This document shows, piece after piece, positions 37,645 through 62,264 of a stretch of DNA of 64,000 nt. The notes under the pieces were generated by a model. That model ran no database searches. It worked only from the letters and a program-made list of their open reading frames with translations, and was not told the DNA's origin. Source of the DNA: Phallusia mammillata (taxonomy: Eukaryota); assembly GCA_965637545.1 (NCBI GenBank), contig OZ281500.1:22010001-22074000 (forward strand), read 5' to 3'. How positions within the stretch are numbered: the first letter of the stretch is position 1; each line of letters opens with the position of its first letter. Both the position numbers and the translations under genes were made by a program.

Positions 37645-39857
37645 TTAAACGTTCAAATTACAACTTAAAAGGGGTTTACAAATTATGCAACTGCACCAGT
37701 CATCTAAATCGTACTCTGTGTTAACACTTTTAACATTTGGTCTTATTTTGGTTGGAGTGAAGAAAATGTTCGTTGTATTGTTTTTCGTGTCATCCAAAGC
37801 CGAATCCAACATCGTAATGTTATAAGTAAGGCGATTATTTTTTGACCTAAACAACGAAAAAAATTTGACCTACAAATTGATAATTTTGACATATTTTGAC
37901 TTTAAAAAACAATTCAAGTAGTTAAATTACGCATTATTGTTCAAAAAGTTAAAATATGGCTTGGCTAATCTAACTAGAGCGAAAGAATGTGCAAAAGTCT
38001 AACAGAAGGGCAAAAATCTGAACACAGACCTAACTTATTCTGAAAAGGGAATGAGCTAATTAAAAATCATTGCCAAAAAACTGCAGCTAAGACACAACGA
38101 AAATTATTCAATACATTTGTCTAAACGAAAGATACATGAAGTATCTAAAACAAAACCGAAGCTAGAGCTGCACCTAATCTCCAGCTGCCGTAAAATGACT
38201 TGGGACCTACCAAAACTTTGCACGTTTTGAGGTGTGTTGAGCATCACGCCATATCAACCTAATTATTTCACTCACTTGATGATTTATGATTCGCAATAAT
38301 TAGGCAATGGGCCAATTATAACAGTATAAAGTAGGCTACAAGATGTAAAACGAATAGTTTGCTGGCAGTGCAACCTCTACAAAACCACGACAATGCAGTT
38401 TGTAAACGATTTTACCTTTGTAAAAAATTTTGACTTTGTAAAAAATTTTGACAAAATTTTGACTTTTTTTGACAAGTCAAAAAATAATCGCCCTAGTTAT
38501 AAGTAACGTAAATAATGTTTCATTGAATTCTAAGTTTAAAGGCATCACTATCAATCGGAGCTGTTGTCCAAGTGTCAACAAGAAAATGAGTTTTGTAAAG
38601 CCACCTTCGGCTGATTCAAGGCGTTTACTATCTTCTAATTTAGATGAAAAACGTTTATGTAATTATTAGAAATGTATGACTAAAAATGTATTAGGTTGCA
38701 GTTTACATTGATATTTTTTACATTTAATGTATTTAGTACAAATGGTTACGTACGTATTTTCAAACAAAAATTCAGTTTGATTATAGTAGGTTTATAAATA
38801 CCACACTTTCCTCTGTCGTCGCTTTTATTTAATTGGTTTGCTTTACTCTGTAAATCGGAAATTATACGTGTCTTTTGTGATTTAATAGGGTAAATTACTG
38901 ATAAGTAACTGACTTTAAAGCAGGTTACACCTGCGCGCAACTGATCTTAGTACCCAGAATAAGTTTCCACGCTTATTTAAATATCTGGCATGACAATACG
39001 CACAGTTTGACATTGGATGAGCTACACCAGTGGTTCCCAACCTTTATTGACGAATTTCTCACTTAACAAAGAAAAACGTTCTCATACCTCCCCAATAGAC
39101 AACATAGTTGATGCTAAACCATACAAAGAAATTAAAAAATGGGTCCTTGATTAACTTCACAGGTTACATGTCCAGAACTAAAGTGTCTATTTACAAACCA
39201 CATGTATTAGTAAATTCCTCCCCTCAACTTTCAAAATTATCCAAGGGTGGAATTCTACCCCGGTTGGGAACCATTAAGTTACACTATCCTTTTGAAGATA
39301 AGCCACACAATCAAACAAATTAGCTCATATTGTGTGCCTTTTATGGTACTTCAACGTCTAACATTGTCTTTTGTTTCATTTTTACTGCAAGTTTACTGGC
39401 TTTTTTCTATTACTTTTGCTGTGAAAACGTACCTGCTGCGTTGCGAAGAACTTACAGCCTTTTCAGAAGATGGCCTTGAAGGCGTAGAGTAACTTCGCAA
39501 TCTTTCAAACGTATGCTCATATGTCCTTTGCTTGTAACCTCTCATATAGATGCTGTAACCGTCGTTGTTTGTTGTGAACTTGTCAGACACGAAAATTACA
39601 TCAATTTGTCTTAGCTTTCCTCTCTTTTCCAGCACACGAAACACGTAAAGACGCCGGTTGTCCAAGCTGTAATACTTGTTATCTCGAATGCAGACACGAA
39701 TTTTTGGAAAATCTGATGCTTTCATTAAACCTCTTTCGATTTTCTTTATAGCCTCATTGACACTTCCACCATGCGTGAATGTATGTCCAATGGTGTCTTG
39801 AGTGAATCTAATTTCGCTTGGAGCTAACCGTATTTCATTATTACCGATATACGCCAT
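37645..39857 (-). CDS. PB13: ParB/Srx-fold domain + CaaX-class tail with frameshifted CaaX
   Basis: Exon 1 39857-39433 (phase-2 donor AG|GTACGT); exon 2 37846-37645 (phase-2 acceptor) ends WCSCIICKPLLSCNLNV* instead of WCSCIIL*. Confidence 0.65.
39028..39276. mobile_element. hAT-type MITE in PB13 intron
   Basis: CAGTGGTTCCCAACC ... GGTTGGGAACCATTA; near-TSD AGCTACAC / AGTTACAC. Confidence 0.75.
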
Positions 39858-40761
39858 TTCCAAAACATAAAATCATCTGCAATCTTTTCTGACTAGATGT
39901 GATCCAACTTTGAACAGTCGTAGGTAAATGAATCCTCAGCTAAAAACCGCCCACCATCAGATACAAAGTTTTCTTATTAAATCGTCATAGACCACTTATG
40001 TGTAAAGAGGGGGTATGACGTTTTTCCTGTTGTCAGTGTGAAGATCGCTTCAGTCCAGAACAAGCTTTTGCATATGGTGGGCCAAGACAAAAAACATAAC
40101 GAATAATCTGTCAGTTTAATGTTAAAACCGGTAGTACCGGTTTCGTTTTAGGAAATATCCATGTCACTATTTGGTGGTGAAACTGGCGTTTAAAACATTT
40201 TATATTGTGTTATGACGTTATAGGTTATGATAAACGCCAGTTATGAAAGTTAAGTACTTTCGTAAAAGATAAACTTACCAATACTACGTGTAGTGCATTG
40301 TAGAAGTCACATTTAAAACTGACGTTACACTTTATAACGTTTAGCCACTGATTATTGTGCGATGTTTACAGCACCCTGCGCCAACGAACAGTCGGTGATA
40401 CTTTGGTTTCGCGTTTGGGACTTCCTCAATTTTTCACGTGATTTTTCGTGACGCGACAACCATTCAGGTTCACCGGAGGTTGGACACTTAACTGTGACGT
40501 TTGCAACCTTTGACAAAGCAACTCCATTACGTTAATAGCATATTTTTTACTGCGTCATGACAATAGTTGCGACACCACTTCGAAGAAATAATATTTCTCT
40601 AGTAATTGTTAAGCAAGCAACTGGAATTTCTACACAATGGAAATAAGACCACTACGAAAATAGTAAAATGGCAAAAGCTGTGTCAAACAGCTCTTAGTAG
40701 TAAAAAAATATGCAACTTTATAAAGCTTGAATGTGCAATGCGCAACATGGAAAAACAAAGC

Positions 40762-41505
40762 CTACAAAATAATGCAACTACAGCACTTTTTTGGTTTGTT
40801 GTCAATCAACTTGTCAAAATGAGTCACATGTGTTCTTGGCTCTGAAGCCGTTGGGTCGATGTCAACTATATATGAATTCTTCAAATTCCTGCTAAAAACA
40901 GGAAAAATGTGTTTTATTCATTTGCCAAACTTGTTGCATTTGTCGAACAGTTTAGATCAGAGTAACCTTGATTGTTTGAAATTCTTTTTTGTTAAGTTTA
41001 CATAGACTTAACGCGGCTATTATATACTGCGTCTTTAATACTTTTGTTGAATTTATAATATGAAATACCTTGAACGTGAAGAACTCACAGGCGTTCTTAT
41101 AGCTTTTTCACTTAAAGGTACTGAAATGCTTCGCAATCTTTCAAACGTGTGCTTGTAGGTTCTTTGCTTGCGACCTCTCACATTGATGCTGTAACCGTCA
41201 TTTTTCGTCGTAAACTTATCAGAGTGTGGAACTCGAACTACATCAATTTGTCTCAGTTTTCCTCTCTTTTCCAGCACACGAAACACGTAAAGACGCCGGT
41301 TGTCCAAGCTGTAATACTTGTTATCCCGAATACAGACACGAATTTTCGGAAAATCTGATGCTTTCATGAAACCACTTTCGATTTTCTTTATAGCCTCATT
41401 GACACTTCCGCCTTTTGTGAATGTCTGTCCAATGGTGTCTTGAGTGAATCTGATTTCACTTGGAGCTAACCGCATTTCATTATTACTTATAGACGCCATT
41501 TCCAT
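40762..41505 (-). CDS. PB14: ParB/Srx-fold domain + polybasic-Cys CaaX tail (KPKKCCSCIIL*)
   Basis: Exons 41505-41069 and 40888-40762; phase 2; in frame to TAG. Confidence 0.8.
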
Positions 41506-42109
41506 GCAATCAGCTGCAATCTGGCTTTTTTGACTGGCTGACACCCAACTTTGAACAGTCGTAGTTAATTTCAGTGCTATCAAAATAGAACTACTAATGA
41601 GGCATATTGTGACGTTCTTCCTATCGTAATGTTGTGTGATTTACCCAATCCAAAGTACATAGTTTTGTCATAGACAACTTATGTGCAATGAGTTATTGCG
41701 TGACGTTTTTCCAATACGGTTTCGACTTTCCAAGTCGATATTGTCCCGTTTATGATTTTGGGTAGTAATAAGAATGATATTTGAAGCAGTAGCCCTCACG
41801 CAGAGAAGATGCCATTGAATTGTAAAGTCAAACTACTTTCGACATCACAAAAGAAAATATGAATTATATAGAGACCTTGATTCACACCGAGTATTATTCA
41901 AGAAATAGACATTGACAACCAAATAAATATTTACTTGAATAATTTAACAAAAAGCAAATCATGGTGTGTTTAAAAATCGTGTTTATCTTTCTACTGGCAC
42001 TGCATAATTATCTCAATAGGACATCATAGCAATTATACTTTAGAACGTCCTACCACATACTAAACAACGGTGTAATATCCTCGACGAATGGCATTGTACA
42101 TTTTATAAC

Positions 42110-43410
42110 TTATTTTGCAATTTTGGGTGCACTTGGAGCATCGGTGATTTGTTTGTTGCTTTTAGATAGAAGATACCAGGCTAATGCAAGAACTCCAAGC
42201 CCGGCCATTAGCTTGACTTTGAATGACCAACCGCCAGAGTCACTGCTGTCTTTGCGAGAGGAGCCGTCATCTTGATTAACATAATACTCATCATGATGGA
42301 CTTTGTAATCAAAGTGACACGTTTGGTAACTTTGGTAAAGTTCTGAGTCATTGTAGTAATAGTTTACGTCATAGTGGCAAAGTGTTTCGTCACAAGCCCT
42401 TGCTGACGAAACATTCCCCGTTTGTACTGGTATCTCAGGCTGTGATGATGTTTTCGGTTTCGTTGACGTGTTGCCTTGGTTACTCCTGAAGGACGAGTTT
42501 CCATAGTTACGGTCGTTGGCGGAAGATTTTTCAGATCGGTTTTGAGATCTAAAATGTATAAAAAAAATTCGGTAATCATTATAGGGAGCAAAACTTGGGT
42601 ATTGCATGATAAAGATACAGTTATTCGTTTGTAAAATTGAATTTTGTCTTTTCATTCGGTCAATTTGACAATAAATGGACAGAGCTGTCGCATTTTACGT
42701 TGCAGTTAGTTGCGTACTTTTAATAAACGTTGAAAATAAAATAACAAGTGGAAATGAAAGCAAGACAGGCTACAAAAACAAATATCTTCACAACAGTATA
42801 TTGCAGTTATAGCCTTATTGTTTACTTCATTGCACATTCAAACACTTGGCGGTAGAAAAATGCATTCGGAATAAAACTTAGGAAATATTTAGCTTTGTGG
42901 GCAGGAACTTGACCGAATGGTCTGGCGCGCCTGACCTACATACAGACATAAAAAAACTGATCGTGATTCGTCCCCGGGAGTGTCCTGGGTTCGAACCCCG
43001 TGATAAAAAGCAATATTTAGCTTAGTGTTAAATTGAACTAACCTGGTACGGGTTTTGAATGTGTGAAGTTTTGTATGCTCTCCTCGAACTTGAACAGACT
43101 GTCCGTCGTTTTTTGTTGACCATTTAAACTCGGGTAAGTGATTTACGAAACGAACAGGGATGCTGTTTATTTTGCCTTGCTTTTGTAAAACACGAAACAC
43201 GTAAAGTCGTCTGTTGTCCGCGCTGTAATACTTTTCGTCGATTCTTGCGACTTTAATAGGTTTTATATCTTCAACCTTTAAGTCGCCGCAGCCAATTTTA
43301 TTGATCAGATCATTTATAGGTTCTCCATTTTGGAAGTTTGCAGCTATGGTGTCCTGGCTAAACCGTATTTCGGACGGCGCTAGGCAGCACACATTGTCAC
43401 CGGCTACCAT
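42110..43410 (-). CDS. PB15: ParB/Srx-fold domain (YSADNRRL) + S/Y/H-rich linker + C-terminal transmembrane helix
   Basis: Exons 43410-43043 and 42548-42110; phase 2; ends VKLMAGLGVLALAWYLLSKSNKQITDAPSAPKIAK*. Confidence 0.75.
42905..43000 (+). pseudogene. tRNA-Leu-like remnant / SINE head in PB15 intron
   Basis: GACCGAATGGTCTGGCGCGCC (A-box-like) and CCTGGGTTCGAACCCC (T-arm/B-box); not a complete cloverleaf. Confidence 0.3.
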
Positions 43411-43931
43411 TATTTCTTCTTTGCAATCGATCTATTTTTGCTACACCCGCTTTTGGATTTAAAATTGACAAAACGTTTTAACATGTTAAATAAGTCACAA
43501 GTTTATATTGTGTGCATTGCAAGTAAACAGGACAAAAACACAAACGATCAAAGAATGCCAGGCACTTTCCTTTTCGACACAATTGTTTTGCTAAAAACTC
43601 AATTGCCAGTGCTATCTGCTTCCTAAACGTCAAACCACATACAGCATGTATTCTTTTGCTGCTTTAATTGAATGAGACATAAGGCAATGCAGATTGCGCG
43701 ATACATGCGGAACAAATGTAGCTGTAAGTCTGTAAGGGAACAAGACCAACAACAACTAAATGCCATGCGATACTAATGTTTTGCAGTGGTATTAAATTAA
43801 GAAGCTACTGCTTAATAATTAATAAATGGTGTTTGTTTTGTTGACACAGACACCACGAGTCGATAAAAGTTCTTCAAACAAAACAACATTTTCTATTTGC
43901 TTGTCAGTCAAATGTACACATATGCTTAGGG

Positions 43932-44147
43932 CAGTGGTTCCCAACCTATTTCGACAACTTCCTTCCCTAACAATTTAAAACATTTTCATTTCTCCCAAAT
44001 ATACTACATAGTAGATGCTAAATCATTAGAAGATTTTTTATCAATTTCGCGGGTCATATTCCCAGAGCTTAAGTGTCTGTTTACAAACCACATGTAAAAA
44101 AATCCTCCCCTCAAGTTTTAAAATTCCTCCCCGGTTGGAAACCATTG
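43932..44147. mobile_element. hAT-type MITE (same family as 39028-39276; truncated copy at ~58090)
   Basis: CAGTGGTTCCCAACC ... GGTTGGAAACCATTG; degenerate TSD GCTTAGGG / CTTTAGGG. Confidence 0.7.
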
Positions 44148-44983
44148 CTTTAGGGGAACTCTCTTCGTAAGATACGGTGGGTGAATTTACAAATTTACTT
44201 CGAATAGTTGAGGTTAGATAACACACTTTAGTGTTCTAAACGCCATTCAAATAACAAGCAGCAACAAACAAGTGCATTAAAATCACCAAACATGCCAAAG
44301 TAATCTGATGGCGAAATTTCTGTAATTTATCTCCCAATTGAAAAAACGACTTTCTGGCAATAACATAACGGTTTTTATTTTTATTTTGATCACTACATTA
44401 CATTTCTGCATCGGTCCAGCTTAAAACCGGCAGCAATAAAGTAAGCTATCATACATGGTCCTTTACTGCCACCTAGGCCCAGACTCAAAATGACAAAGTT
44501 CTTCCAAAACACGTCAACCACTGAAAGACTTGAATTGTAGAAAGCGAAACCCTTCAAACCGTTTAGCCACTGATTATTGTGCGCTGGTTACAACACCCTG
44601 CGCCAGCAAACTCTCGGTGATACTTTGGTTTCGCGATTGGGACTTCCGCAAGTTGCTGCGTGATCTGTTATGACGCGACTGTCATTTAGGTTCACCGAAG
44701 GTTGGGCGTTTTAACTGTGACGTTTCTAGCCTTTAACAAAATACATCTATTCCATGGTTTGTGTATTTTGGGAATTTGCAGAAACAATATTTGTCATTCT
44801 TTGCTACTAGTATACTACAGAGCAGGTTTAAGCAACTTAGGTTTACACAATGGTGAATAACACTATTATGATAAATGTAACGAAATGGTGAAAAGTTGTG
44901 TCACAAACTTATGGTAGTAGAAAAAACATACAAAATTGTTCAATAAAGCTTGAATATACAATGAGCAACATAAAAAAACAAGC

Positions 44984-45986
44984 CTACAAAATAACGCAGC
45001 TACACCAGTTGTCTGGTTCTTTGTCCATTGTGTCATATTGAATCACGCTTGGCCTTGGTTTTGTGAGAGTGAAGTCAACATTTGACCTTGGCTCGGTAGG
45101 AGTGATGTCAACATTTGACCTTGACTCCGAAACAGGTGAATCGACGTCCGATTCCAAGCTTTCCATATCAACCACAATTGAATTTGCCGCATTCATGCTT
45201 GAAATTGAAGAAATATTATACTTTTATGTGATGCCAAAATCTTATACCTTTGTTAAAAGAATGTAGTTTACCTTTGTAAAGTTATATGATACAATAGTAT
45301 GGCTACAAGCGTAGGCTTTTTTTTAGAATTTGTCACATTTTGCGCGACTTAAAATCTACTTTTTTGTAGAGTATTTTTTGTAGAATATATGTTAATGTAG
45401 TTAAAAGACATTTTTTTCGCAAAAGTGACAAAAGTAACAAAACACAGACAAAACATTTTGACTTTTCAAAATAATCCATTATCCTGATGAAGGTGTATTG
45501 TACGGCACGTCAAAACGTCTAATATGTCTTGCAGCAACAGCTAAAATACAAAACATACCTTGGAAGTGAATAACTTGCAGGTCTTGTGGCCAGTTCACTG
45601 AAAGGTGCTGAAATACTTCGTAATGTGTCAAACGTATGATCGTAGGTCTCGTAGTGGCGTCCTCTCACATCGATACTGTATCCGTCGTTGTTTGTTGTAA
45701 ACTTGTCAATGTATGTGACCCTAACAACACCAATTTGTCTTAGCTTTCCTCTCTTTTCCAGCACACGAAACACGTAAAGACGCCGGTTGTCCAAGCTGTA
45801 ATACTTGTTATCCCGAATACAGACACGAATTTTCGGAAAATCTGATGCTTTCATTAAACCTCTTTCGATTTTCTTTATAGCCTCATTGACACTTCCGCCT
45901 TTTGTGAATGTCTGTCCAATGGTGTCTTGAGTGAATCTGATTTCACTTGGAGCTAACCGTATTTCTTTATTGCTGGTATACGCCAT
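44984..45986 (-). CDS. PB16: ParB/Srx-fold domain + CaaX tail (WCSCVIL*)
   Basis: Exons 45986-45559 and 45197-44984; phase 2; in frame with ORF 44984..45196. Confidence 0.8.
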
Positions 45987-46719
45987 TTCCGAGATGTGCA
46001 ACCAACTGCAATCTGATTTTTCTGACTGGCTGACACCCAACTTTGAACAGTCTTAGATAATTTCAGCGCTATCAAAATAGAACTACTAATAAGGCATATT
46101 GTGACGTTTTTTCTATGGTAATGTTGTGTGATTCACCTATCCATAGTACAGTTTTGTCATCGGCAACTTATGTGTAATGAGTTATTGCGTGACGTTTTCC
46201 CAATATGGTTTCGACTTTCCAAGTCAAGATTGTCCCGTTTATGATTTTGGGTAGTAATAAGAATGATATTTGAAGCAGTAGCCCTCATGCAGAGAAGATG
46301 CCATTGAATTGTAAAGTCAAACTACTTTCGACATCACAAAAAAAATATGAATTACATGGAGACTGATTCACACTAAGAACTATTCGAGAAAGAGACATTG
46401 ACAACCTAATAAATATTTGCTTGAATAATTTAACAAAAAGCAAATCATGGTATGATTAAAAATCGTCCACTCTGGGTCCGCAAGACACTTTGCCGGAATA
46501 TAAAACTCTGAAAGCACAACTTTCCAAATTAAAAAAAAAAACACTTGCCGGGAACAATTGCTTGCAGTTGAAAGCTACCACTATTTCTTTGCGTTATTCG
46601 AGGAAAACAATGGTTAAATGAAGTGAATGTGTTTTACTATTATCTATTATTTGTCACAAATTAAACAACGGTATAAAATTCTCGACGAATGACCTCCCAC
46701 ATTTTACAATCGCTTTCGC

Positions 46720-47127
46720 TGTTTTTGCTGCACTTGGAGCATAAGTGGTGATTTGTTTCTTTAGTTTATCATATAAGATACCAGGCTGAAGCGAGACCGC
46801 CAATCCCGAAAATTAGCTTGACCTTTAATGGCCAACCAGTCACTGTATTTACGCGAAGAGCCGTCATCTCGATTAACATAATAGTCATCATGATGGACTT
46901 AAGTAATCGCAATGATGGTAACTTTGGTAAAGTGCTGAGTCATTGTAGTAATAGTTAACGTCATAGTGGTAAAATGCATCGTCATATGACCTTGATGACG
47001 ACAGAATCGCGTTTACTGGTATTTCGGGCAGCGATGTTGTTTCCAGGTTCGTTGACGTGTTGTCTTGGTAACTCCCGAGGGACGCTACGGGTCTTTGGCG
47101 GGACTTTTTTCAGATCGTTTTTGACAT
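46720..47127 (-). pseudogene. Disrupted paralogue of the PB15 transmembrane-tail exon
   Basis: Phase-2 acceptor at 47127, homologous to 42548-42110, but TAG at 47087-47085 and later frameshifts. Confidence 0.7.
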
Positions 47128-48328
47128 CTGATATACAAAACATACAATTCTTGAGTTAAGCAAGGTGCTCTGATCAAACACTAGGGCGAAACTTTTGTAT
47201 TCCATGATAAAGATACAGATAAAAATTAGGTTTGGTCTCCATTATCGATCAATTTGACACTAGACGAATTCAGTCATTCTTTTTTAATAAATGTAAAAAT
47301 AAAAACATACGTCGAAATAAAAATAAGTTAGGCTTCAACGAGCAACAACAAAAGAACCAAATTAACCTGCTGCGCTTACATGTATATTTCCAATCCCTTT
47401 TTTGCATCACCTTCGTTAAGTCTCCCCGAAGAAAACAATTAGCAAATCGGCTGGTTCCGTCGAGCATCTTATTCCCTGCTTTATTACGATCGATTGCGAG
47501 ATCTCAGATGGTAGTTCGCTGTGGAAGGTGCTGCTTGTCTTCGACAGGGCGTCTGATCTAAAAAAAACCTACGGCAGTTTTTTGCTCTTTTGTATGTGAC
47601 CAAGTTATCTAGTTCGTTTGGTATGATACAAAGCGGTTAAAAGCAGGCCACTGAGGTAAAGCAAAAACAAAAACACACTGAGGTAAAGCAAGCAGCAAAA
47701 AATATAAATGACAAGTGTAATTTGTTTATAGGGGAACAGCTGAATTTCTGGTAAATGTGAGGTCGCGGGGGTGTTTTAGTTATTTAGGGATCGTATTGCC
47801 TAAAATAGGTGCAATATAACTTTTTTTGAAAAAGAACGAGCGTGACAAAGACTTGATGTCGTGTAATTATTCTTCCTGTGCTTTTGGACCTCGATGGCAA
47901 ATTGATCTCAAGGCGATTACGGTGCTTACCCGGGCATCAAAATAATTTAGTCTGTCAGCGCTTCTGGTGTTGTTAATGTTTACTGACGTAGTAGGAATGA
48001 ACAGGGAGTTGCATGTAGTAGGCATTAGAATGAAACAATTTGATCACCTCGAGTTTATAAGTGTCTTTACAATTTGAAAAAACGCAATTCATGATATAGT
48101 GTGGTAGCCCGACATCGGTACGTGCTGCGAGTGATAGCTTGCAGGATTGATTGTTACGAAGAAGGGGGCTTTAATTAATGCGAGGTAAAGGGAATGTTTT
48201 TCTTTATTATTTAAGTTTAAGACATCCCGTGTCTTATTATAGTACGCCAGGCTCATTAAAGGCGTTATACAGAACCAGGCCAGTCTTCCAAGCATTCCCA
48301 TATGGCAAGGCTCAGACTAAAAAAATCT

Positions 48329-48402
48329 AGCCAGTGGTGGGACTCGAACCCACGACAGGAGTCTTTCCGGGACTCGCGCTCTACCAACTGAGCTACACAG
48401 GC
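48329..48402 (-). ncRNA. tRNA-like element (loop CC-GGA-AA), probably a SINE head rather than a functional tRNA
   Basis: GCCTGTG-TA-GCTC AGTTGGTA GAGC-GC-GAGTC CCGGAAA GACTC-CTGTC-GTGGG TTCGAGT CCCAC-CACTGGC-T, followed by a T7 run; C33, extra base before the anticodon stem, U:U in acceptor stem, no long variable arm. Confidence 0.6.
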
Positions 48403-48469
48403 TGTGTTTTATATAAATATAATGTCGTCAGTTTTAAATCGAGCTAGAGAAAAAGGTAAAGGCAACGAT

Positions 48470-48693
48470 TCACATTATGGGAAATTTTGTTTTAGTTAAA
48501 GTAAGGAAAACACCACCACTACTACCATCCCCCGCAGGAGTTGTTAGTATTGGGAGAAACTGTTGTCCAAAGTAGTCACTGCAGGCTTGTGATAGTTTCG
48601 TTCCAAAACACCCAGTGTTGTTCGCAGTTTGACTGGTCGTTGATACAAACCCAAGGTATTTTGGATGCGTCGATCGCTGAATTTGCTGCAAAC
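48470..48693 (-). CDS. Tentative terminal exon of PB17 (reached via 17-nt micro-exon 49100-49084)
   Basis: Phase-1 acceptor CATAG|GT in frame with ORF 48470..48691; ORF preserved in all three copies. Confidence 0.35.
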
Positions 48694-49219
48694 CTATGAA
48701 AATCTAAAACCCTTGCTTGTTAAAACGCTTGAAAGTACAAAACAGTAGATAGTTTACCTTTTTCAGGCAATAAACTGTTGTGCCACATCCAGTAATGATA
48801 ATACATGTTAACAAGCATTGATGACGCCATGTTAGTCATGTAAAAATATATTCAGTGGTTGTCAAACGCACATCTACCAGTTTTTGTTGCCATGCGTTAT
48901 GTCGTTTTTTTATTAGTTTGGTCTTTTCATGTTGTTACTAAGTGTTGTCAAGGGAGTGTCAAAAAAAAAGAACCCACGCATCCGACAACAAACCACCGAA
49001 GGAGGTATTCGAACTCATGACCCCTTTTATAAAATAGCCTTAATAATTTTATTTTTTGTGTAGTGTTAAAAGTTTTTTTTTACCATTTGGTTGCATTGCC
49101 CTGTTTTTGTTAGACTAGAAGTATATTTTTGTCATTTGCTTGCATTATTCTGTTTTATTAGATTAGAAGTATATTTTTTTAACCTTGTTATTTGAAATCG
49201 TATTTTAGAAACAACATAC

Positions 49220-49623
49220 CTTTGTTGCAAAGCATATGAAGAGTTATCTTGCAATGTGTCAAACGTATGATCGTAGGTCTCGTAGTGGCGTCCTCTCACA
49301 TCGATACTGTATCCGTCGTTGTTTGTTGTAAACTTTTTAGACGAAATATGTGAGACACAAATTACATCAATTTTGCGTAGTTTTCCTCTCTTTTCCAGCA
49401 CACGAAACACGTAAAGACGCCGGTTGTCCAAACTGTAATACTTTTTATCCTTAACGCAGACACGAATTTTTGGAAAAACTGATGCTTTCATTGAACCCCT
49501 TTCTATTTTCCTAATAGCCTCATTGACACTTCCGCCTTTTTTGAATTCGCGTCTTATGCTGTCTTGAGTGAACCTGATTTCACTTGGAGCTAAGCGCATT
49601 GTATTGTTACCGGTATGCGACAT
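49220..49623 (-). CDS. PB17: ParB/Srx-fold exon 1
   Basis: MSHTGNNTMRLAPSEIRF..YSLDNRRL; phase-2 donor AG|GTATGT; alternative upstream ATG at 49671. Confidence 0.85.
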
Positions 49624-50119
49624 TTCTGAGATTAAAAACCCAGCTACAAACCTTTTCTGACCAGCTAGCATCCAACTTATAACACTTATAGGCAACCTAT
49701 GTGCAATAAGGCGTGGTGTGACGTATTTACTATTTTAATTTTGTGTGGTGCATTCATCGGTAAAAATGTTTAGTCATAGGCAACCTATGTGCAATAAGGC
49801 GTGGTGTGACGTATTTACTATTTCAATTTTGTGTGGTGCATTCATCGATGAAACGGTTTGGTCATAGACAACATACGTAATGAGGCATAATGTGAAGTTG
49901 CTTTTAATACAGTTTCGACTTTTGTAGTGACAAGCTCGGAAATTTTTTTCTTTATCTGGTATAGTTGAAAGTAATATGAATGACACTTAAGTCGTCGTTT
50001 GTACGCGGAGAAGATCGGAATTGTAAATGTAAATTGTAATTTGTAAAATTTTGTAATCTTTTTTTCGAATTGTAATTTTTTACTACACCATGACAAGAAA
50101 ATATGAGTTATAGCCTATG

Positions 50120-50305
50120 CAGTGGTGAGATTTAGCCGGTTCGCACCGGTTCTATAGATCCGTCACGCGTAATTTTATGAGATCAGCGAGCGGTTAGCAT
50201 TACTGGTTACTCTCAATGGAAATATAACTTTTTGTAACAGAACCGGTTGAAAAATTTGACTTTTGTGATATAACCGACTGACAAAAAATTTCAATCTCAC
50301 CACTG
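50120..50305. mobile_element. hAT-like MITE (partial copies ~55375-55532 and 63913-64000)
   Basis: TIRs CAGTGGTGAGATT / AATCTCACCACTG; TSD degenerate. Confidence 0.65.
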
Positions 50306-50767
50306 GCTATATGGAAACTTTACTTTGCATTAACACGTATTTAGTAAAGGGACATTGACAACCAAACCCATATTTATTTGAAAAAAATCAATTAAGAAGC
50401 AAATTGAGATGTGTTTGAAAGTCGTCCACTCTGGGTTCTATAAGCACAACGTTCCCAAAATTGCAAAAAAAAATTATATTAAGGGGGAACAATTGTTGGT
50501 CAAAAAACAACAGTGTTAGCAAGTAAATGAGTTTTACAAGAATTACTTTTTTCCCTATTTTTTTCATAGATTTCTAGTGCCAATGTACTAATCTCATCAG
50601 AGACATCGTAGAATTTAACATCGTATCACATACTTAACAGCGACGCAAAAACCTTGACGAATTGCCTCGCACATTTTACAATCTCTTGAGCAGTTTTTGC
50701 TGCAATCGGGACGTAAATGGTGATTTGTTCTTTCCTTTATCATAGAAGATACCAGGCCAAAGCAAGG

Positions 50768-50863
50768 CTACCAAACGCGACTATTAGCATGTCCAATGGT
50801 GTCTTGAGTGAATCTGATTTCGCTTGGTGCTAACCGTATTTCATTATTACCGATATACGCCAT
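50768..50863 (-). pseudogene. psi-C: 5' fragment of a PB13 copy fused out of frame to the end of a TM-tail exon
   Basis: MAYIGNNEIRLAPSEIRFTQDTIGH|ANSRVW*; junction at a shared CAT (50791-50789). Confidence 0.85.
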
Positions 50864-51767
50864 TTCCAAAACATAAAATCATCTGCAATCTTTTCTGACT
50901 AGATGTGATCCAATTTTGAACAGTCGTAGGTAAATGAATCCTCAGCTAAAAACCGCCCACCATCAGATACAAAGTTTTCTTATTAAATCGTCATAGACCA
51001 CTTATGTGTAAAGAGGGGGTATGACGTTTTTCCTGTTGTCAGTGTGAAGATCGCTTCAGTCCAGAACAAGCTTTTGCATATGGTGGGCCAAGACAAAAAA
51101 CATAACGAATAATCTGTCAGTTTAATGTTAAAACCGGTAGTACCGGTTTCGTTTTAGGAAATATCCATGTCACTATTTGGTGGTGAAACTGGCGTTTAAA
51201 ACATTTTATATTGTGTTATGACGTTATAGGTTATGATAAACGCCAGTTATGAAAGTTAAGTACTTTCGTAAAAGATAAACTTACCAATACTACGTGTAGT
51301 GCATTGTAGAAGTCACATTTAAAACTGACGTTACACTTTATAACGTTTAGCCACTGATTATTGTGCGATGTTTACAGCACCCTGCGCCAACGAACAGTCG
51401 GTGATACTTTGGTTTCGCGTTTGGGACTTCCTCAATTTTTCACGTGATTTTTCGTGACGCGACAACCATTCAGGTTCACCGGAGGTTGGACACTTAACTG
51501 TGACGTTTGCAACCTTTGACAAAGCAACTCCATTACGATGATAGCATATCTTTTACTACGCCATGACAATAGTTGCGACACCACTTCGAAGAAATAATAT
51601 TTCTCTAGTAATTGTTAAGCAAGCAACTGGAATTTCTACACAATGGAAATAAGACCACTACGAAAATAGTAAAATGGCAAAAGCTGTGTCAAAAAGCTCT
51701 TAGTAGTAAAAAAATATGCAACTCAATAAAGCTTGAATGTGCAATGCGCAACATGGAAAAACAAAGC

Positions 51768-51894
51768 CTACAAAATAATGCAACTACAGCACTTTTTTGG
51801 TTTGTTGTCAATCAACTTGTCAAAATGAGTCACATGTGTTCTTGGCTGTGAAGCCGTTGGGTAGATGTCAACTATATATGAATTCTTCAAATTC
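51768..51894 (-). CDS. Orphan intact CaaX exon (copy of PB14 exon 2)
   Basis: Phase-2 acceptor; NLKNSYIVDIYPTASQPRTHVTHFDKLIDNKPKKCCSCIIL*; only ~45 nt of its own exon 1 survive (52075-52118). Confidence 0.55.
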
Positions 51895-53380
51895 CTGCTA
51901 AAAATAGGAAAAATGTGTTTTATTCACATGCCAAACTTGTTGCAGTGGTCGAACAGTTTAGATCAGAGTAACCTTGATTGTTTGAAATTCTTTTTTGTTA
52001 AGTTCACATAGACTTTACGCGGCTATTACATACTGCGTCTTTAATACTTTTGTTAATGTTATAAAATAAAATACCTTGAACGTGAAGAACTCACAGGCGT
52101 TCTTATAGCTTTTGCACTTTCGGGCAGCGATGTTGTTTCCAGGTTCGTTGACGTGTTGTCGTGGTAACTCCCGAGGGACGCTACGGGTCTTTGGCGGGAC
52201 TTTTTTCAGATCGTTTTTGACATCTGAATACAAAAAATACAATTCTTGAGTTTAAGCAAGGTGCTCTGACCAAACACTAGGGCAAAACATTTGTTTTACA
52301 TGATAAAGATACAGATAAAATTAGGTTTTGTCTCCATTATCGATTAATTGGACATTATACGATTTTAGCTATTCTGTTTTAAGCTGTATGTAGCGTATTT
52401 TAATAAACGCAAAAAATAAAGAAAAAATACGTCGAAATAAAAATAAGTTAGGCTTCAACGAGCAAAAGAACCACATTAACCTGCTGTGCTTACATGTATA
52501 ATTCTAACCCCTTTTTGCATCACCTTCGTTAAGTCTCCCCGAAACAAACAGTTAGCAAATCGGCTGGTTCCGTCGAGCATCTTATTCCCTGTATTACGAT
52601 CGATTGCGAGATCTCAGATGGTAGTTCGCTGTGGAAGGTGCTGCAGCACAAGCATGCTTGTCTTCGACAGGGCGTCTGATCTAAAAAAAAAATCCTACGG
52701 CAGTTTTTTGCTCTTTTGTATGTGACCAAGTTATCTAGTTCGTTTGGTATGATACAAAGCGGTTAAAAGCAGGCAACAAAAACACACTGATATAAAACAA
52801 GAAGCAAACAAGATATAAATGACAAGTGTAATTTGTATATATGGGAACAGGTGAATTTGTTTGGTTTCTGGTAAATGTGAGGTCGCGGGGGTGTTTCATT
52901 TAGGGGTCGTATTGCCTAAAATAGGTGCAATTTAACTTTTTTTGAAAAAGAACGAGCGTGACAAAGACTTGATGTCGTGTAATTATTCTTCCTGTGCTTT
53001 TGGACCTCGATGGCAAATTGATCTCAAGTCGATTACGGTGCTTACCCGGGCATCAAAATAATTATGTCTGTCATCCTTTCTGGTGTTGTTAATGTGTACT
53101 GACGAAATAGGTGTAAACAAGGAGTTACATGTGGTAGGCATTAGAATGAAACAATTTGATCACCTCGAGTTTATAAGTGTCTTTACAATTAAAAAAAACG
53201 CAATTCATGATATAGTGTGGTAGCCCGACATCGGTAAGTGCTGCGAGTGATAGCTTGCAGGATTGATTGTTACAAAGAAGGGGGCTTTAATTAATGCCAG
53301 GTAAAGGAAATGTTTTTCTTTATTATTAAGACCGGTCTCCCAAGCATTCCCATATGGCAAGGCTCAGACTAGAAAAATAT

Positions 53381-53454
53381 AGCCAGTGGTGGGATTCGAA
53401 CCCACGACAGGAGTCTTTCCGGGACTCGCGCTCTACCAACTGAGCTACACAGGC
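53381..53454 (-). ncRNA. tRNA-like element / SINE head, copy 2
   Basis: Same structure as 48329-48402, with T-loop TTCGAAT. Confidence 0.6.
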
Positions 53455-53523
53455 TGTGTTTTTTGTGTAAATATAATGTCGCCAGTTTTAAATCGAGCGA
53501 GAGAAAAAGGTAAAGGCAACGAT

Positions 53524-53747
53524 TCACATTATGGGAAATTTTGTTTTAGTTAAAGTAAGGAAAACACCACCACTACTACCATCCCCCGCAGGAGTTGTTA
53601 GTATTGGGAGAAACTGTTGTCCAAAGTAGTCACTGCAGGCTTGTGATAGTTTCGTTCCAAAACACCCAGTGTTGTTCGCAGTTTGACTGGTCGTTGATAC
53701 AAACCCAAGGTATTTTAGATGCGTCGATCGCTGAATTTGCTGCAAAC
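53524..53747 (-). CDS. Tentative terminal exon of PB18 (via micro-exon 54150-54134)
   Basis: Paralogue of 48470-48693 with one amino-acid change. Confidence 0.35.
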
Positions 53748-54219
53748 CTATGAAAATCTAAAACCTCTGCTTGTTAAAACGCTTGAAAATACAAAACAGT
53801 AGATAGTTTACCTTTTTCAGGCAATAAACTGTTGTGCCACATCCAGTAATGATAATACATGTTAACAAACATTGATGACGCCATGTTAGTCATGTAAAAA
53901 TATATTCAGTGGTTGTCAAACGCACATCTACCGGTTTTTGTTGCCATGCGTTATGTCGTTGTTTATTAGTTTGGTCTTTTCATGTTGTTACTAAGTGTTG
54001 CCAAGGGAGTGCCAAAAAAAGAACCCATGCATCCGACAAAAAAACACCGAAGGAGGTATTCGAACTCTTGACCCCTTTTATAAAATAGCCTTAATAATTT
54101 TATTTTTTGTGTAGTGTTAAAAGTTTTTTTTACCATTTGGTTGCATTGCCCTGTTTTATTAGATTAGAAGTATATTTTTTAACCTTGTTATTTGAAATCT
54201 TATCTTAGAAACAACATAC

Positions 54220-54617
54220 CTTTGTTGTAAAGCATATGAAGAGTTATCTTGCAAAGTTTTAAACGTATGGGCGTAGGTCTCGGACTGGCGACCTCTCACA
54301 TAGATGCTGTAACCGTCGTTGTTTGTTGTAAATTTGTCAATGTAGGTGACCAAAGTCACATAAATTTGTCTTAGCAACCCTCTCTTTTCCAGCACACGAA
54401 ACATGTAAAGACGCCGGTTGTCTAAACTGTAATACTTGCTACCCTGAACGCAGACTCGAATGTTTCGAAAACCTGATGCTTTCATTAAACCTCTTTCGAT
54501 TTCCCTAATAGCTTTATTGACACTTCCACCACGCGTGAATGTCTGTCCTATGTTGTCTTGAGTGAATCTGATTTTACTTGGAGCTAAGCGCATTGTATTG
54601 TTACAGGTATGCGACAT
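54220..54617 (-). CDS. PB18: ParB/Srx-fold exon 1
   Basis: MSHTCNNTMRLAPSKIRF..YSLDNRRL; phase-2 donor AG|GTATGT; alternative ATG at 54665. Confidence 0.85.
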
Positions 54618-54684
54618 TTCTAAGATTAAAAACCCAGCTACAAACCTTTTCTGACCAGCTAGCATCCAACTTATAACACTTATA

Positions 54685-55300
54685 TAGGCAACCTATGCGC
54701 AATAAGGCGTGGTGTGACGTATTTACTATTTTAATTTTGTGTGGTGCATTCATCGGTAAAAATGTTTAGTCATAGACAACCTATGTGGAATAGAGCATAG
54801 TGTGACGTTTTTACTATTTTAATTTTGTGTGGTGCATTCATCGGTAAAAATGTTTAGTCATAGACAACCTATGTGGAATAGAGCATAGTGTGACGTTTTT
54901 ACTATTTTAATTTTGTGTGGTGCATTCATCGGTAAAAATGTTTAGCCTATGTGGAATAGAGCATAGTGTGACGTTTTTACTATTTTAATTTTGTGTGGTG
55001 CATTCATCGGTAAAAATGTTTAGTCATAGACAACCTATGTGGAAAAGAGCATAGTGTGACGTTTTTACTATTTTAATTTTGTGTGGTGCATTCATCGGTA
55101 AAAATGTTTAGTCATAGACAACCTATGTTGAATAGAGCATAGTGTGACGTTTTTACTATTTTAATTTTGTGTGGTGCATTCATCGGTAAAAAATGTTTGG
55201 TCATAGACAACCTATGTGGAATAGAGCATAGTGTGACGTTTTTACTATTTTAATTTTGTGCGGTGCATCCATCGATAAAACGGTTTGGTCATAGACAACA
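54685..55300. repeat. 88-bp tandem repeat (about 7 units) directly upstream of PB18
   Basis: CATAGACAAC landmarks at 54771, 54859, 55025, 55113, 55202, 55290; only 2 units upstream of PB17 and PB20. Confidence 0.9.
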
Positions 55301-55970
55301 TACGTAACGAGGCATAATGTGAAGTTTTTTCTTATACAGTTTCGACTTTTGTAGTGGTAAGCTCAAAAATTTCCGGTTCTATAGATCCGTCTCGCGTAAT
55401 GTTATGAGATCAGCGAACCGGTTAGCATTACTGGTTACTGTCAATGGAAATATAAACTTTTGTAACAGAACCGGTTTTAAAATTTGACTTTTGTGATATA
55501 ACCGACTGCCATAAAATTTCAATCTCACCACTGGCTATATGGAGACTTTACTTTGCATTGACACGTATTTAGGCAAGGGACATTGACAACTAAACCCCTA
55601 TTTATTTGAATAAATCAACTAAGAAGCAAATTAAGATGTGTTTTAAAGTCGTCCACACTGGGTTCTATAAGCACAACATTTCCAAAGTTGCAAAAACAGA
55701 CTTACTTTTAGGAGGAACAATAGTTGGTCAAAAGAACAAAAACAACATTTTTAGCAAGTAAATGAGTTTTACAAGACTTAATTTTTATGTTTTTTCATAG
55801 ATTTCTAGTGCCAATGTACTAATCTCATTAAAGACATCGTAGAATTTAACATCGTATTACATACTTAACAGCGATGCAAAAACCTTGACGAATAATTGTC
55901 TCGCACATTTTACAATCTCTTGAGCAGTTTTTGCTACAATCGGGACGTAAATGGTAATTTGTTCTTTACT

Positions 55971-56982
55971 TTATCGTAGAAGATAACAGGCTAAAGCAAG
56001 GCCACCAAGCGCGACCATTAGCATGGTTTTGAACAACCAACCACTAGAGTCACTGTTGTCTTTACGGAGTGAACGGTCATATTGTTTATCGGAATGGTAA
56101 TAGTAAGGGGCTTCGTAATGGTGTTGTGACTTTCGGTAACTATGGTAAGGTGCTGAGTCATTGTAGTAAAATTTCGTTAGAGCAAGAAGTTTCACCTCGT
56201 AGAGTCACATTTCTGGTCTCAAACAGTATTTGCCAACGAAATGACTTTAACTGACACTTGATTACGTAGGTCGCCCATATACAAATGCATATTAGGCTCG
56301 GAATGTCTTTTTATTTGATCGTAACATTGGCTTAGCGATGTATGCATTTGTATATGGGCGACCTACGTAAACAAGTGTCAGTTAAAGTCATTTCGTTGGC
56401 AAATACTGTTTGAGACCAGAAATGTGACTTTACAAACTGAAACTTCTTGCTCTAACGTACATCTGTGCCAATTTATAGAAAAATATTAGGCTCGGAAGGT
56501 CTTTTTATTTGTTTCGTAACATTGGACTATGTACTGTGTATGCATTTGTATATATGCGACTTATGTAAACGAGTATCGGGTAAAGTCATTTCATTGGAAA
56601 ATACTGTTTGAAACCAGAAATGTGACTTTACAAGCTCAAACGTTTTCTCCCATACCTCAAAATGTCGATTTGTACGTACCTTGACCACTCTCTATGGTTT
56701 AAAAAAATAAAAATGAAAAAATATATTTGGAAATTGTACGCAGTGGTGCGTAACGCTTATTAACAATTTTCGCACTTACCATTTCGGCGAAATGATGATG
56801 GTTCCAAACTGCAGTACTTGTTTGTTCCATAATTCCATGACGGCAGTGTCACCGTTTCTTTACTTTCCAAACGTTGCGATGACGTTTCCGGTCTCGTTGA
56901 CGTGTTGCCTTGGTAACTCACGAGGGACGCGTTTCCATAGTCACGGTCGTTGGCGGCAGATATTTTAGATCGGTTTTGAGAT
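55971..56982 (-). pseudogene. Split TM-tail exon region of the psi-D unit
   Basis: Open phase-2/1 exon 56982-56780; the 3' TM-coding part (MLMVALGGLALACYLLR*) at 56195-55971 is separated from it by a fold-back palindrome. Confidence 0.6.
56175..56457. repeat. 117-bp-arm inverted repeat with 49-bp spacer, plus a diverged tandem copy at ~56486-56640
   Basis: 56175-56291 pairs with 56341-56457 with only a few mismatches. Confidence 0.9.
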
Positions 56983-57277
56983 CTAAAATAAAAAATACAG
57001 CTCTTTCGGTAAGCACTAAAGGGAACAAAGCTTTCTAATTAGATGGTAAAGATACAGTTATTCGTTTGTAAAAATGAGTTTTGTCTTTTCTTTCGGTTAC
57101 TTGGACAATAAATGAACACAAGCGTCGCATTTCACGCTTCAGTTAGTTGCGTACTTTTAATAAACGTGGAAAATGAAATAACAAGATAGGCCACAACAAA
57201 TTTATTATCTTCAAAACAGTGTACAGTATTGCAGTTGTACCCTAATTGTTTGCTTTGGTGAACATTCAAACACTTAC

Positions 57278-57577
57278 CTGGGCCGGGTTTTGAAGGTATG
57301 AGGCAGCGTATGTATTCCTCTTACTTTAACAGACCGCCCTCTGTTTTTTGTTGTCCGTTTTATGTTAGGTAAGTGATTTACCAGACGAACAGGGATGCTG
57401 TTGATTTGCCTTGCTTTTGTAAAACACGAAACGCATACAGTCGCCTATTGTCTGCGCTGTAATACTTCCCGGCGATTCTTGCGACTTTAATAGGTTTTAT
57501 ATCTTCAACCTTTAAGTAACCGCAACCAATTTCATTTCGGACGGGGCCAGGTAGCACACATTGTCACCAACTACCAT
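57278..57577 (-). pseudogene. psi-D: PB15 paralogue with a frameshifting internal deletion
   Basis: MVVGDNVCYLAPSE, then loss of the RFSQDTI..NK segment; exon is 300 nt versus 368 nt in PB15; YSADNRRL codons and phase-2 donor retained. Confidence 0.85.
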
Positions 57578-58786
57578 TATACCTTCTTTGCAATCAAACT
57601 ATGTTTGCTACACCCGCCTTTGAAATAAAAGTTGTCAAAAAGTTTAAACATGTCACATATGTCACAATTTTAATGTTGTGCATTACAAGTAAGCAAAACA
57701 AAAAGAAAAACTATCAAAGAATGCCAGGCACTTTCCTTTTGGACACACACAGTTGCCGAATAAAAACTTGGCAGTGCTATCTGTTTCCTAAACGTCAAAC
57801 CACATACAATGTATCCTTTTACTGATTTGATTTAATGAGACATAAGGCAATGCAGATTGTGCGAATCCATGCAAAACAAAATCTAACTGTAAGCCTGTAG
57901 GGAAACAACACCTGCAACTAACTAAATGCCATGCGATACTGCACTTTTCAGTGGTATTAAAGAAGCTAGACTGCTTAATAATTAATAAGTAGTATTTGTT
58001 TGGCTGGCACAGACACCACGAGTCGATAAAAGTTCTTCAAACAAAACAACATTTTCTATTTGCTTGTCAGTACATATTTTCTTAGGGCAGTGGTTCCCAA
58101 CCTTTTCGATAAATTCCTACCTTAACAATACAAACCATTTTCATTTCTCCCTAACATATTACATAGTAAATGGTAACTTTAATCTTTGCATTGCATTTCT
58201 GCATCGGTTTCCAGATTAAAACCGGCAGCAACAAAGTAAGCTATCATGCATGGCCCTTTACTGCCACCCAGGCCCTGACTCAAAATTACAAAGTTCTTTC
58301 AACACGTCAACCACTGAGAGACTTGAATTGTAGAAAGCGAAACCTTTCAAACCGTTTAGCCACTGATTATTGTGCGCTGGTTACAACACCCTGCGCCAGC
58401 AAATTCTCGGTGATACTTTGGTTTCGCGATTGGAACTTCCGCAAGCTGCTGCGTGATCTGTTATGACGCGACTGCCATTCAGGTTCACCGATGTTGGGCG
58501 CTTTAACTGTGACGTTTTAGCCTTTAACAAAAGACATCTATTCCATGGTTTGTGTATTTTGGGAACTTGCAGAAACAATATTTGTCATTCATGGTTACCA
58601 ATATGCTATAGAGCAGGTTTAGGCAACTCAAGTTTAAACAGTGGTAAATAAGACCATTAAATGTAACGAAAAAAACTACTAAAATGGTAAAAGTTGTGTC
58701 AAAAACTGATGATAGTATCAAAAACATAAAAAAATTTGCAATAAAGCTTGAATATACAATGCGCAAGTACATAGCAAAAAAAATGC

Positions 58787-59780
58787 CTACAAAATAATGC
58801 AACTACACCAGTTGTCTGGCTCGTTGTCCGTTGTGTCATATTGAACCACTCTTGGCCTTGGTTTTGTGAGAGTGAAGTCAACATTTGACCTTGGCTCGGT
58901 AGGAGTGATGTCAACATTTGACCTTGACTCCGAAACAGGTGAATCGACGTCCGATTCCATACTTTCCATATCAACCACAACTGAATTTGCCGCATTCATG
59001 CTTGAAAATGAAGAAATATTATACTTTTATGGGATGCCAAAATCTTATACCTTTGTTAAAAGAATATAGTTTACCTTTGTAAAGTTATATGATACAATAG
59101 TATGGCTACAAGCGTAGGCTTTTTTTATCAGAATTTGTCACATTTTGCGCGACTTAAAATCGACTTTTTTGTAGAGTATTCTGTTAATGTAGTCAAAAAA
59201 ACATTTTTTTTCACAAAAGAGACAAAAGTAACAAAACACAGACAAAACATTTTGACTTTTCAAAATAATCCATTATCCTGATGAAGGTATATTGTACGGC
59301 ACGTCAAAACGTCTAATATGTCTTGCAGCAACAGCTAAAATACAAAACATACCTTGGAAGTGAATAACTTGCAGGTCTTGTGGCCAGTTCACTGAAAGGT
59401 GCTGAAATACTTCGTAATGTGTCAAACGTATGATCGTAGATCTCGTAGTGGCGTCCTCTCACATCGATACTGTATCCGTCGTTGTTTGTTGTAAACTTGT
59501 CAATGTATGTGACCCTAACAACACCAATTTGTCTTAGCTTTCCTCTCTTTTCCAGCACACGAAACACGTAAAGACGCCGGTTGTCCAAGCTGTAATACTT
59601 GTTATCCCGAATACAGACACGAATTTTCGGAAAATCTGATGCTTTCATTAAACCTCTTTCGATTTTCTTTATAGCCTCATTGACACTTCCGCCTTTTGTG
59701 AATGTATGTCCAATGGTGTCTTGAGTGAATCTGATTTCACTTGGAGCTAACCGTATTTCTTTATTGCTGGTATACGCCAT
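58787..59780 (-). CDS. PB19: ParB/Srx-fold domain + CaaX tail (WCSCIIL*)
   Basis: Exons 59780-59353 and 59000-58787; phase 2. Confidence 0.8.
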
Positions 59781-62197: not shown

Positions 62198-62264
62198 TGT
62201 GTTTTATATAAATATAATGTCGTCAGTTTTAAATCGAGCTAGAGAAAAAGGTAAAGGCAACGAT

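Follow-up and report, generated by a model that had tools for sequence, protein, structure and literature searches.

Predicted lipid-anchor tail exons joined to toxin-like ParB-fold heads in a tandem gene array of Phallusia mammillata

A 64,000-nucleotide stretch of Phallusia mammillata DNA (positions 22,010,001 to 22,074,000 of contig OZ281500.1, C7 in our numbering, from a 240-Mb assembly; referred to here as the window) carries a tandem array of genes that encode a ParB-like head domain, and in this study we analyzed those members in which a second exon ends in a CaaX box, the C-terminal signal for prenylation. The window has a G+C content of 36 to 43% and contains no runs of N. When one head exon was used as the query, tblastn found 24 places in the window that encode the head domain, which is about 120 residues long and has the signature L-A-P-S-E-I-R-F-T-Q-D ... 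Y-Y-S-L-D-N-R-R-L-Y ... K-F-T-T-x-N-D-G. A scan of all six frames for C-[SC]-C-[IVLM]-[IVLM]-[LMFI]-stop yielded exactly four endings of the form C-[SC]-C-[IV]-I-L-stop, every one of them on the minus strand and each as quoted in an earlier, preliminary description of this DNA: KPKKCCSCIIL in the gene PB14 (stop at 40762), WCSCVIL in PB16 (44984), KPKKCCSCIIL again in an orphan exon (51768), and WCSCIIL in PB19 (58787).

Three of the four tail exons join an upstream ParB-like head through a GT-AG intron of phase 2, with no internal stops. In PB14, a first exon with a ParBL1-like head (41499..41069, minus strand, as are all of the genes in this paragraph; ATG at 41499) ends in the phase 2 donor AAG|GTATTT and is separated by a 177-nucleotide intron from exon 2 (40891..40762), which carries a short linker, KPKK, CCSCIIL, and the stop, giving 186 amino acids in total. 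The ParBL1-like head exon of PB16 (45986..45559; donor AAG|GTATGT, phase 2), whose folded model had a predicted local distance difference test score (pLDDT) of 86, is followed after 361 nucleotides by a tail exon (45197..44984) with an acidic, Ser-Pro-rich linker that ends in EPDNWCSCVIL and the stop (213 amino acids in total). PB19 has a recent duplicate of the PB16 head, with 2 amino acid differences (59780..59353), and, after an intron of 352 nucleotides, a tail exon that ends in EPDNWCSCIIL and the stop (59000..58787; 213 amino acids in total). The head-exon donor AAG|GTAT is conserved and cuts 2 bases into a codon; the tail acceptor is a pyrimidine-rich sequence ending in AG, after which 1 base completes that codon. 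The joined models were subjected to a scripted check of frame and stops only, and searches and folds were run on single exons.

Two kinds of tail are represented. Type A (PB14 and the orphan exon) consists of a short linker and KPKK followed by CCSCIIL. Its open frame is just 51 codons, because of which it is absent from an open reading frame (ORF) list with a floor of 60 amino acids; the preliminary description was correct in calling the PB14-type exon invisible there. Type B (PB16 and PB19) has a 60-residue acidic, Ser/Pro-rich linker ending in EPDNWCSC[VI]IL. The last codons and the 3' flank are common to both types and little else is alike, and the CaaX end is either the same or changed between V and I. 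PB16 and PB19 lie in a segmental duplicate (44396..50206 versus 58189..64000; 97.9% identity); therefore, the window contains two independent tail types and not four. The array extends beyond the window, where there are one more type A gene, ending in CCSCVIL, and two more type B genes. Genome-wide, there are four type B tails, three type A tails, and five CCIM-ended genes on contig C6, and the head profile has at least 52 matches. The five genes on C6 form a ParBL1 cluster (C6:8019400-8086700) in which the head is followed by a phase 2 donor (AG|GTTCGT), as in the window genes, and in which exon 2 ends in a run of 4 to 6 Cys and then Q-C-C-I-M; donors and acceptors of this cluster were identified by eye in the open frames. 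The Q-C-C-I-M ending is a CaaX box of the farnesyl or dual type with a probable heavy palmitoylation site.

Two further pieces are related to these genes. PB13 has a head of the PB14/PB16/PB19 clade, as judged by head comparison (39857..39433, minus strand), and, beyond an intron of 1,586 nucleotides, a candidate exon 2 (37846..37645, minus strand) that is homologous to the other tails and has lost the CaaX box. In the tail alignment, a 1-base deletion in a T run swaps IIL-stop for IICKPLLSCNLNV-stop, such that DDWCSCII is followed by C-K-P... up to the stop at 37645. The orphan type A tail exon (51897..51768, minus strand) has 95% amino acid identity to the PB14 tail and an intact acceptor and CCSCIIL stop, and no head exon lies directly upstream. 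It sits in a 1,332-bp copy (50789..52119) of 39783..41113, 98% identical and on the minus strand, which contains a 26-codon PB13-like head fragment (50863..50786), the orphan tail, an intron, and the last 53 nucleotides of a PB14-like head exon and which is fused at 52119 to the start of a transmembrane-type exon 2. The CCSCIIL end that the preliminary description had attributed to this exon is present, but the exon is a duplication fragment and not a fourth gene.

The boxes of the window genes, CIIL in PB14, PB19, and the orphan exon and CVIL in PB16, each with the stop directly after it, have the form of geranylgeranyltransferase I (GGTase-I) substrates. In a humanized yeast reporter, modification by human GGTase-I was complete for CIIL, CTIL, CVIL, and CVLL and almost complete for CIIM, CVIM, and CTII (PMC11152559); the substrate boxes of that study, tested on a reporter with the human enzyme, are those of the window genes and their homologues. 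The earlier reading of the CaaL ends and upstream Cys residues as membrane tails therefore agrees with published complete substrates, and a small basic patch (KPKK) is added to the Cys and CaaX elements in type A. The head begins about 10 residues from the Met, and there is no hydrophobic leader or signal peptide, so the proteins would be cytosolic, where prenylation occurs. The genome encodes three prenyltransferase beta-subunit loci and one ICMT locus, as expected for an animal. The tails share the order C-x-C-a-a-X with H-Ras and CC-S-(A)-C-V-I-L with Rap2b; in both of those proteins, the upstream Cys is palmitoylated and constitutes the second membrane signal. The hypervariable tails of the Ras family (C-x-C-VLS in H-Ras, CCSACVIL in Rap2b, and CCIL in RalA) resemble those described here in having a disordered linker, one or two palmitoylatable Cys residues or a basic patch, and a CaaX box, that is, a two-signal anchor; however, the P-loop G domain is absent from the window genes, and the resemblance is limited to the tail.

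The same architecture was found in other animals. An exhaustive profile search with the head gave 4,509 cluster representatives at an E value of ≤0.001, and tail endings were counted in 159 homologue sequences. A C-x-x-x ending was present in 16 of these, and 13 ended in C-[VITSF]-[IL]-[LM], usually with further Cys residues before it (CCCVIL, CCCCVIL, CSCVIL, CLCVIL, CCVIL, WCKCTIL, CSCTIL, and WCGCIIM). The pattern is not due to chance, since 13 of 159 homologues from other species carry the ending, compared with the approximately 1 to 2% of proteins that are thought to be prenylated (PMC11152559). The named sources of head-plus-CaaX proteins are Styela clava, Ciona intestinalis, Octopus bimaculoides, O. 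sinensis, O. vulgaris, and the mussel Sinanodonta woodiana, so that the architecture recurs over two phyla; all of the proteins are annotated as uncharacterized. The closest named homologues are ascidian; the best Styela clava protein is about 45% identical. In genomic DNA of O. sinensis, there are two tandem copies, each a single uninterrupted ORF with a head, Pro/Tyr/Glu repeats, and a WCVIL or CCVIL end; therefore, the architecture is independent of splice prediction. The Ciona RefSeq model has a single phase 2 intron (AG|GTAAGT ... CAG|G) in the same place as in the window genes. XP_078481546 and XP_078481569 are CaaX paralogues in Ciona. In addition, two assembled contigs from sequencing runs encode a head and a CaaX tail in one ORF. 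On the opposite strand of one of them are 631 intron-free codons that, from their translation, we take to be GBF1-like, and because of this stretch the contig looks transcript-derived. Whether exon 2 is in fact spliced to the ParB-like exon, on which the preliminary description had made its proposal depend, is thus answered indirectly and in favor of splicing by the Octopus ORFs, the Ciona intron, and the transcript-like contigs. Because the boxes equal published full GGTase-I substrates and the architecture recurs across species, lipid anchoring of the products on cytosolic membrane faces is a prediction well supported by sequence. A separate observation concerns Styela clava XP_077973299.1 (P0017), in which the tail of a first copy (…DWCNCTL) continues into a second head that ends in WCKCTIL; this RefSeq model has the appearance of two tandem genes fused by read-through.

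A tree of 66 head domains, itself short and built by a quick method, split the animal heads from the bacterial heads with a Shimodaira-Hasegawa-like approximate likelihood ratio test (SH-aLRT) value of 96. CaaX-tailed lineages, from tunicates and molluscs, made up most of the deep animal branches, and the window CaaL genes and PB13 formed one group within a nine-member clade (starred in the tree). It might be suggested from this tree, and as a suggestion only, that the CaaX tail is ancestral in the animal family. Among diverged paralogues, the head exons had a ratio of nonsynonymous to synonymous substitutions (dN/dS) of 0.3 to 0.5 at dS values of 0.28 to 0.57; the heads are therefore constrained coding sequence under purifying selection.

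The head combines a ParB/Srx-type fold with kinship to bacterial toxin domains. The AlphaFold (AF2) model, from a 28-sequence alignment, had a pLDDT of 86 and a predicted template modeling score (pTM) of 0.79. The top Foldseek matches all belonged to the ParB/Srx superfamily (best E value, 5.8e-4; probability, 1.0), and with VIA-align every match with a Z score of ≥3.3 was a ParB/Srx protein (top Z scores, 7.9 and 7.3). The matching structures comprised Atu1540, Noc, ParB with cytidine diphosphate (CDP) or cytidine triphosphate (CTP), plant and human sulfiredoxin, an archaeal serine kinase (SerK), SbnI, KorB, PadC, and Osa; the head, as modeled, has a ParB/Srx-type fold. N67-R68-R69 is invariant in the 28-sequence alignment, which includes two bacterial members, and S64 is conserved at ≥90%; the head retains all of the residues that are invariant between animal and bacterial members (I-R-F, N-R-R-L, and G). 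In the model, N-R-R starts the main helix following the central strand. ParB has GERR at this position, and sulfiredoxin has GGCHR. The core fold and an arginine motif at the start of this helix are shared with the ParB/Noc CTPases and sulfiredoxin; however, GERRxRA and FGGCHR are replaced by D-N-R-R-L, with no Cys at the position equivalent to the catalytic Cys of sulfiredoxin, and the canonical helix-turn-helix and C-terminal dimerization domains of ParB are absent. The head is a domain of about 120 amino acids with a disordered tail, and its matches cover only the N-terminal domain of ParB and Noc.

In a bacterial genome scan, the head domain was 36 to 42% identical to the extreme C terminus of a 1,430-amino-acid RHS-repeat protein of Paenibacillus tyrfis and of a 1,421-amino-acid haemagglutinin-like protein of Kiloniella, and a small ORF lies directly after each of these toxin genes. 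A metagenomic member (P0129) has a PT-TG pre-toxin domain, and another member forms an orphan cassette with a DUF7660 gene after it. Tox-ParBL1 was described by Zhang et al. in 2012 as a predicted ParB fold with a conserved [ST] and an [NT][RT][RT] motif in which the last two residues are mostly R, occurring as the C-terminal module of RHS and filamentous-haemagglutinin (FHA) toxins, with metazoan and other eukaryotic members already listed (PMC3482391). The head fits this description in its fold, in its Ser/Thr and N-R-R motif, and in the RHS or FHA carriers and downstream small gene of its bacterial relatives. Membership in this family, whose type member is Neisseria gonorrhoeae NGK_2271, rests on the published description. 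The genes in the window differ from bacterial Tox-ParBL1 in that the domain stands at the N terminus, as the head of an animal gene with an intron, has no delivery or immunity partners (no counterpart of the bacterial immunity candidates was sought in the array), and is fused to a predicted lipid-anchor tail. Although the domain and its presence in metazoans were already known, we found no prior description of the head-plus-CaaX architecture or its conservation in the literature searched: PMC3482391 and the other papers naming Tox-ParBL1 do not mention a ParBL1 head with a lipid-anchor tail, and none of these papers deals with the animal members. Neither the heads nor the bacterial toxin ends had a meaningful match in Pfam, NCBIfam, or PADLOC; matches to DUF6551 (E value, 0.007; one member) and PD-Lambda-5_A (E value, 0.006) were discarded as too weak, and KMT2C/D SET-domain matches of the profile to PDB sequences (E value, 0.02) were at chance level and due to a short common word, Y-x-x-N-R. 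The small ORFs right after bacterial ParBL1 toxin ends (L003:1381-1647, L024:4302-4730, and L025:4296-4523, one with DUF7660) are candidates for immunity proteins.

We propose, with a probability of roughly 0.7, that these genes encode toxin-derived enzyme heads of the ParB fold that are tethered to cytosolic membrane faces by a prenylated tail exon. Exon 1 would provide the cytosolic, Tox-ParBL1-like domain of about 120 residues with a ParB/Srx fold, which in bacteria is the killing end of RHS or haemagglutinin-type contact toxins, and exon 2, past the conserved phase 2 intron, would provide a disordered linker and a CaaL box accompanied by one or two additional Cys residues, together with the KPKK patch in type A. 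GGTase-I would then place a geranylgeranyl group on the CaaX Cys, the last three residues would be removed by RCE1, the new end would be methylated by ICMT, and the adjacent Cys would be palmitoylated. The head would thereby be anchored to the plasma membrane or endomembranes on their cytosolic side, as H-Ras, Rap2b, and OAS1 p46 are. It would most likely bind a nucleoside triphosphate or another phosphate-bearing substrate (nucleotide or nucleic acid) via the N-R-R at the start of the main helix and then cleave or modify a target near the membrane. The tail exon may act as an exchangeable address label, since paralogues in the array end instead in a transmembrane segment, a basic KRRK-type motif, or repeats.

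Several points weigh against this proposal. The lipidation itself is a prediction, and the window gene models were drawn solely from the genomic DNA of this species. Scores of the fold matches are moderate (Z < 8), although the list of matches is homogeneous, and biochemical activity has been reported for no Tox-ParBL1 domain in the literature searched. PB13 has lost its box and one tail is orphaned; therefore, some members are decaying. The type B linker is almost neutral, with a dN/dS of 0.6 to 0.9; such nearly free evolution is as in disordered tethers. Finally, the last 11 residues of the tail differ only by V/I among the type B copies of this genome, and this conservation is not significant because there are only four copies.

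The anchor might be real and the proteins might nevertheless be membrane-tethered, nucleotide-dependent switches or regulators with a housekeeping or signaling function instead of immune or conflict effectors, an alternative that we regard as unlikely but as deserving serious consideration. ParB-family proteins are CTP-dependent switches, the membrane binding of Noc depends on CTP, and structures of Noc and of ParB with CTP or CDP are among the best fold matches of the head. Furthermore, the tail has the Ras-like hypervariable architecture of small GTPases, the heads are under purifying selection, and the architecture has been kept between tunicates and molluscs, which suggests an old, retained function. 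However, the nearest non-animal relatives by sequence are RHS/FHA toxin ends and not DNA-clamp ParBs, the helix-turn-helix and dimerization domains are missing, and large tandem expansions restricted to single lineages, the presence of decaying copies, and the swapping of tails are features more usual in conflict genes.

It is improbable that the tail exons are relics, such that the heads are translated alone into the intron or the copies are pseudogenes and this genome makes no prenylated protein. Each head ORF does continue for 4 to 14 codons beyond the donor to an in-frame stop, and the broken PB13 box, the orphaned tail, and a linker dN/dS near 1 would be in keeping with decay; however, all copies, as well as the distant C6 cluster, retain donor, phase, and acceptor, the tails are free of internal stops, the CaaX end is the same or V/I changed between types A and B, which have little else in common, and the annotation of Ciona shows the same two-exon design. 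We consider it very improbable that the Cys-rich C terminus escapes prenylation and instead undergoes S-acylation only or serves in metal binding or disulfide formation. Across species, the exact C terminus is always formed by the four residues C-aliphatic-I-L/M, which is needless for metal binding or acylation, and the endings match the complete GGTase-I substrates found by experiment (PMC11152559). The clustering of the Cys residues (CCSC and, in the C6 genes, CCCCC) would suit such a role, but with no signal peptide the proteins are expected in the cytosol, where disulfides are unlikely.

Because the family stems from toxins, has expanded in tandem, includes decaying copies, and swaps its tails, we tentatively infer a possible role in conflict or immunity. 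GBP1, GBP2, and GBP5 are prenylated innate-immune enzymes that reach endomembranes through a CaaX box at the C terminus. Likewise, OAS1 p46 is prenylated via a CTIL box and brought to endomembranes (PMC8357416, PMC7612834). By analogy, the window genes combine a putative cytosolic conflict-type enzyme with a C-terminal CaaX box, and a Styela homologue has the same CTIL box as OAS1 p46; the folds, in contrast, are unrelated (nucleotidyltransferase in OAS1 and dynamin-like GTPase in the GBPs versus ParB/Srx here). The preliminary description had likened a membrane-anchored, toxin-like enzyme to prenylated OAS1 p46 and GBPs, which act at viral replication organelles or pathogen vacuoles. Its toxin-like part gains from the kinship of the ParB/Srx head with polymorphic-toxin domains, whereas action of the window proteins at those sites is unsupported and remains an analogy. 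A broader and tentative proposal, which we would call possible but hardly probable, is that this is an old animal family of toxin-derived ParB-fold enzymes, ancestrally lipid anchored, in which arrays have swapped tail exons (CaaL, Cys-string-CCIM, transmembrane, KRRK-type, and repeat) over a conserved phase 2 intron and thereby produced compartment-addressed effectors of intracellular defense with a nucleotide-dependent chemistry new to animal immunity.

Since 2012, Tox-ParBL1 has been a predicted toxin module, with animals confined to a one-line remark; the family now acquires a concrete, predicted cell-biological property, anchoring by geranylgeranyl and palmitoyl groups. A modular gene design also emerges, in which a single head exon can be combined with different address exons, and orthologous architectures are available from more than one phylum. 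Should the heads prove to be active enzymes, they would be a further example of bacterial toxin domains that animals have domesticated and placed at membranes like OAS1 p46 and the GBPs, and they would offer a eukaryotic way into Tox-ParBL1 biochemistry.

Alternative tails elsewhere in the array, those of PB15 and of three plus-strand genes, support the idea of the tail exon as an exchangeable address label. PB17 (head at 49623..49220, minus strand) belongs to the same starred clade and has the same phase 2 donor, and its exon 2 is of a truncated transmembrane type and not CaaX; PB18 (54617..54220) and PB20 (63417..63014), also on the minus strand, are like PB17. The transmembrane-type exon 2 copies after PB17 (47180..46760), PB18 (52276..52184), and PB20 (60975..60560), all on the minus strand, have a common 10-nucleotide deletion that leads to a stop after 14 codons (...RCQKRSEKSPAKDP), and the old transmembrane coding sequence downstream is frameshifted; each of the three genes either encodes a truncated, soluble product or is decaying. 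PB18 was rejected as the source of a head for the orphan tail, given this early stop, downstream of which the chimeric frame (52205..52062) lies; direct splicing of PB18 exon 1 to the orphan tail is phase compatible and unsupported. In PB15 (43383..42110, minus strand), the head donor ACCAG|GTTAGT is followed by a phase 2 splice to an exon at about 42549..42110 that encodes a Tyr/Asp-rich linker, a C-terminal hydrophobic segment (LMAGLGVLALAWYLL), and then about 20 residues, which resembles a tail anchor as an alternative to CaaX. Three plus-strand heads (27513, 29798, and 33110; 27513..35382) are each followed by an acidic ORF of about 340 codons with a basic KRRK/KKRTK end, possibly a nuclear-targeting tail, and the minus-strand heads at 4951-18281 are followed by acidic repeat ORFs of the TENEPGTS type.

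The right half of the array is built of nested recent segmental duplications, comprising 47022..49899 versus 52118..54897 (87 to 96% identity) in addition to the 97.9% duplicate that contains PB16 and PB19. Their left breakpoints lie inside exons and have left chimeric fragments, such as the head fragments at 50863..50786 and 57521..57405. Just upstream of PB18, there is a tandem repeat with a period of 88 bp (54684..55329; self-matches at shifts of 88, 176, and 254).

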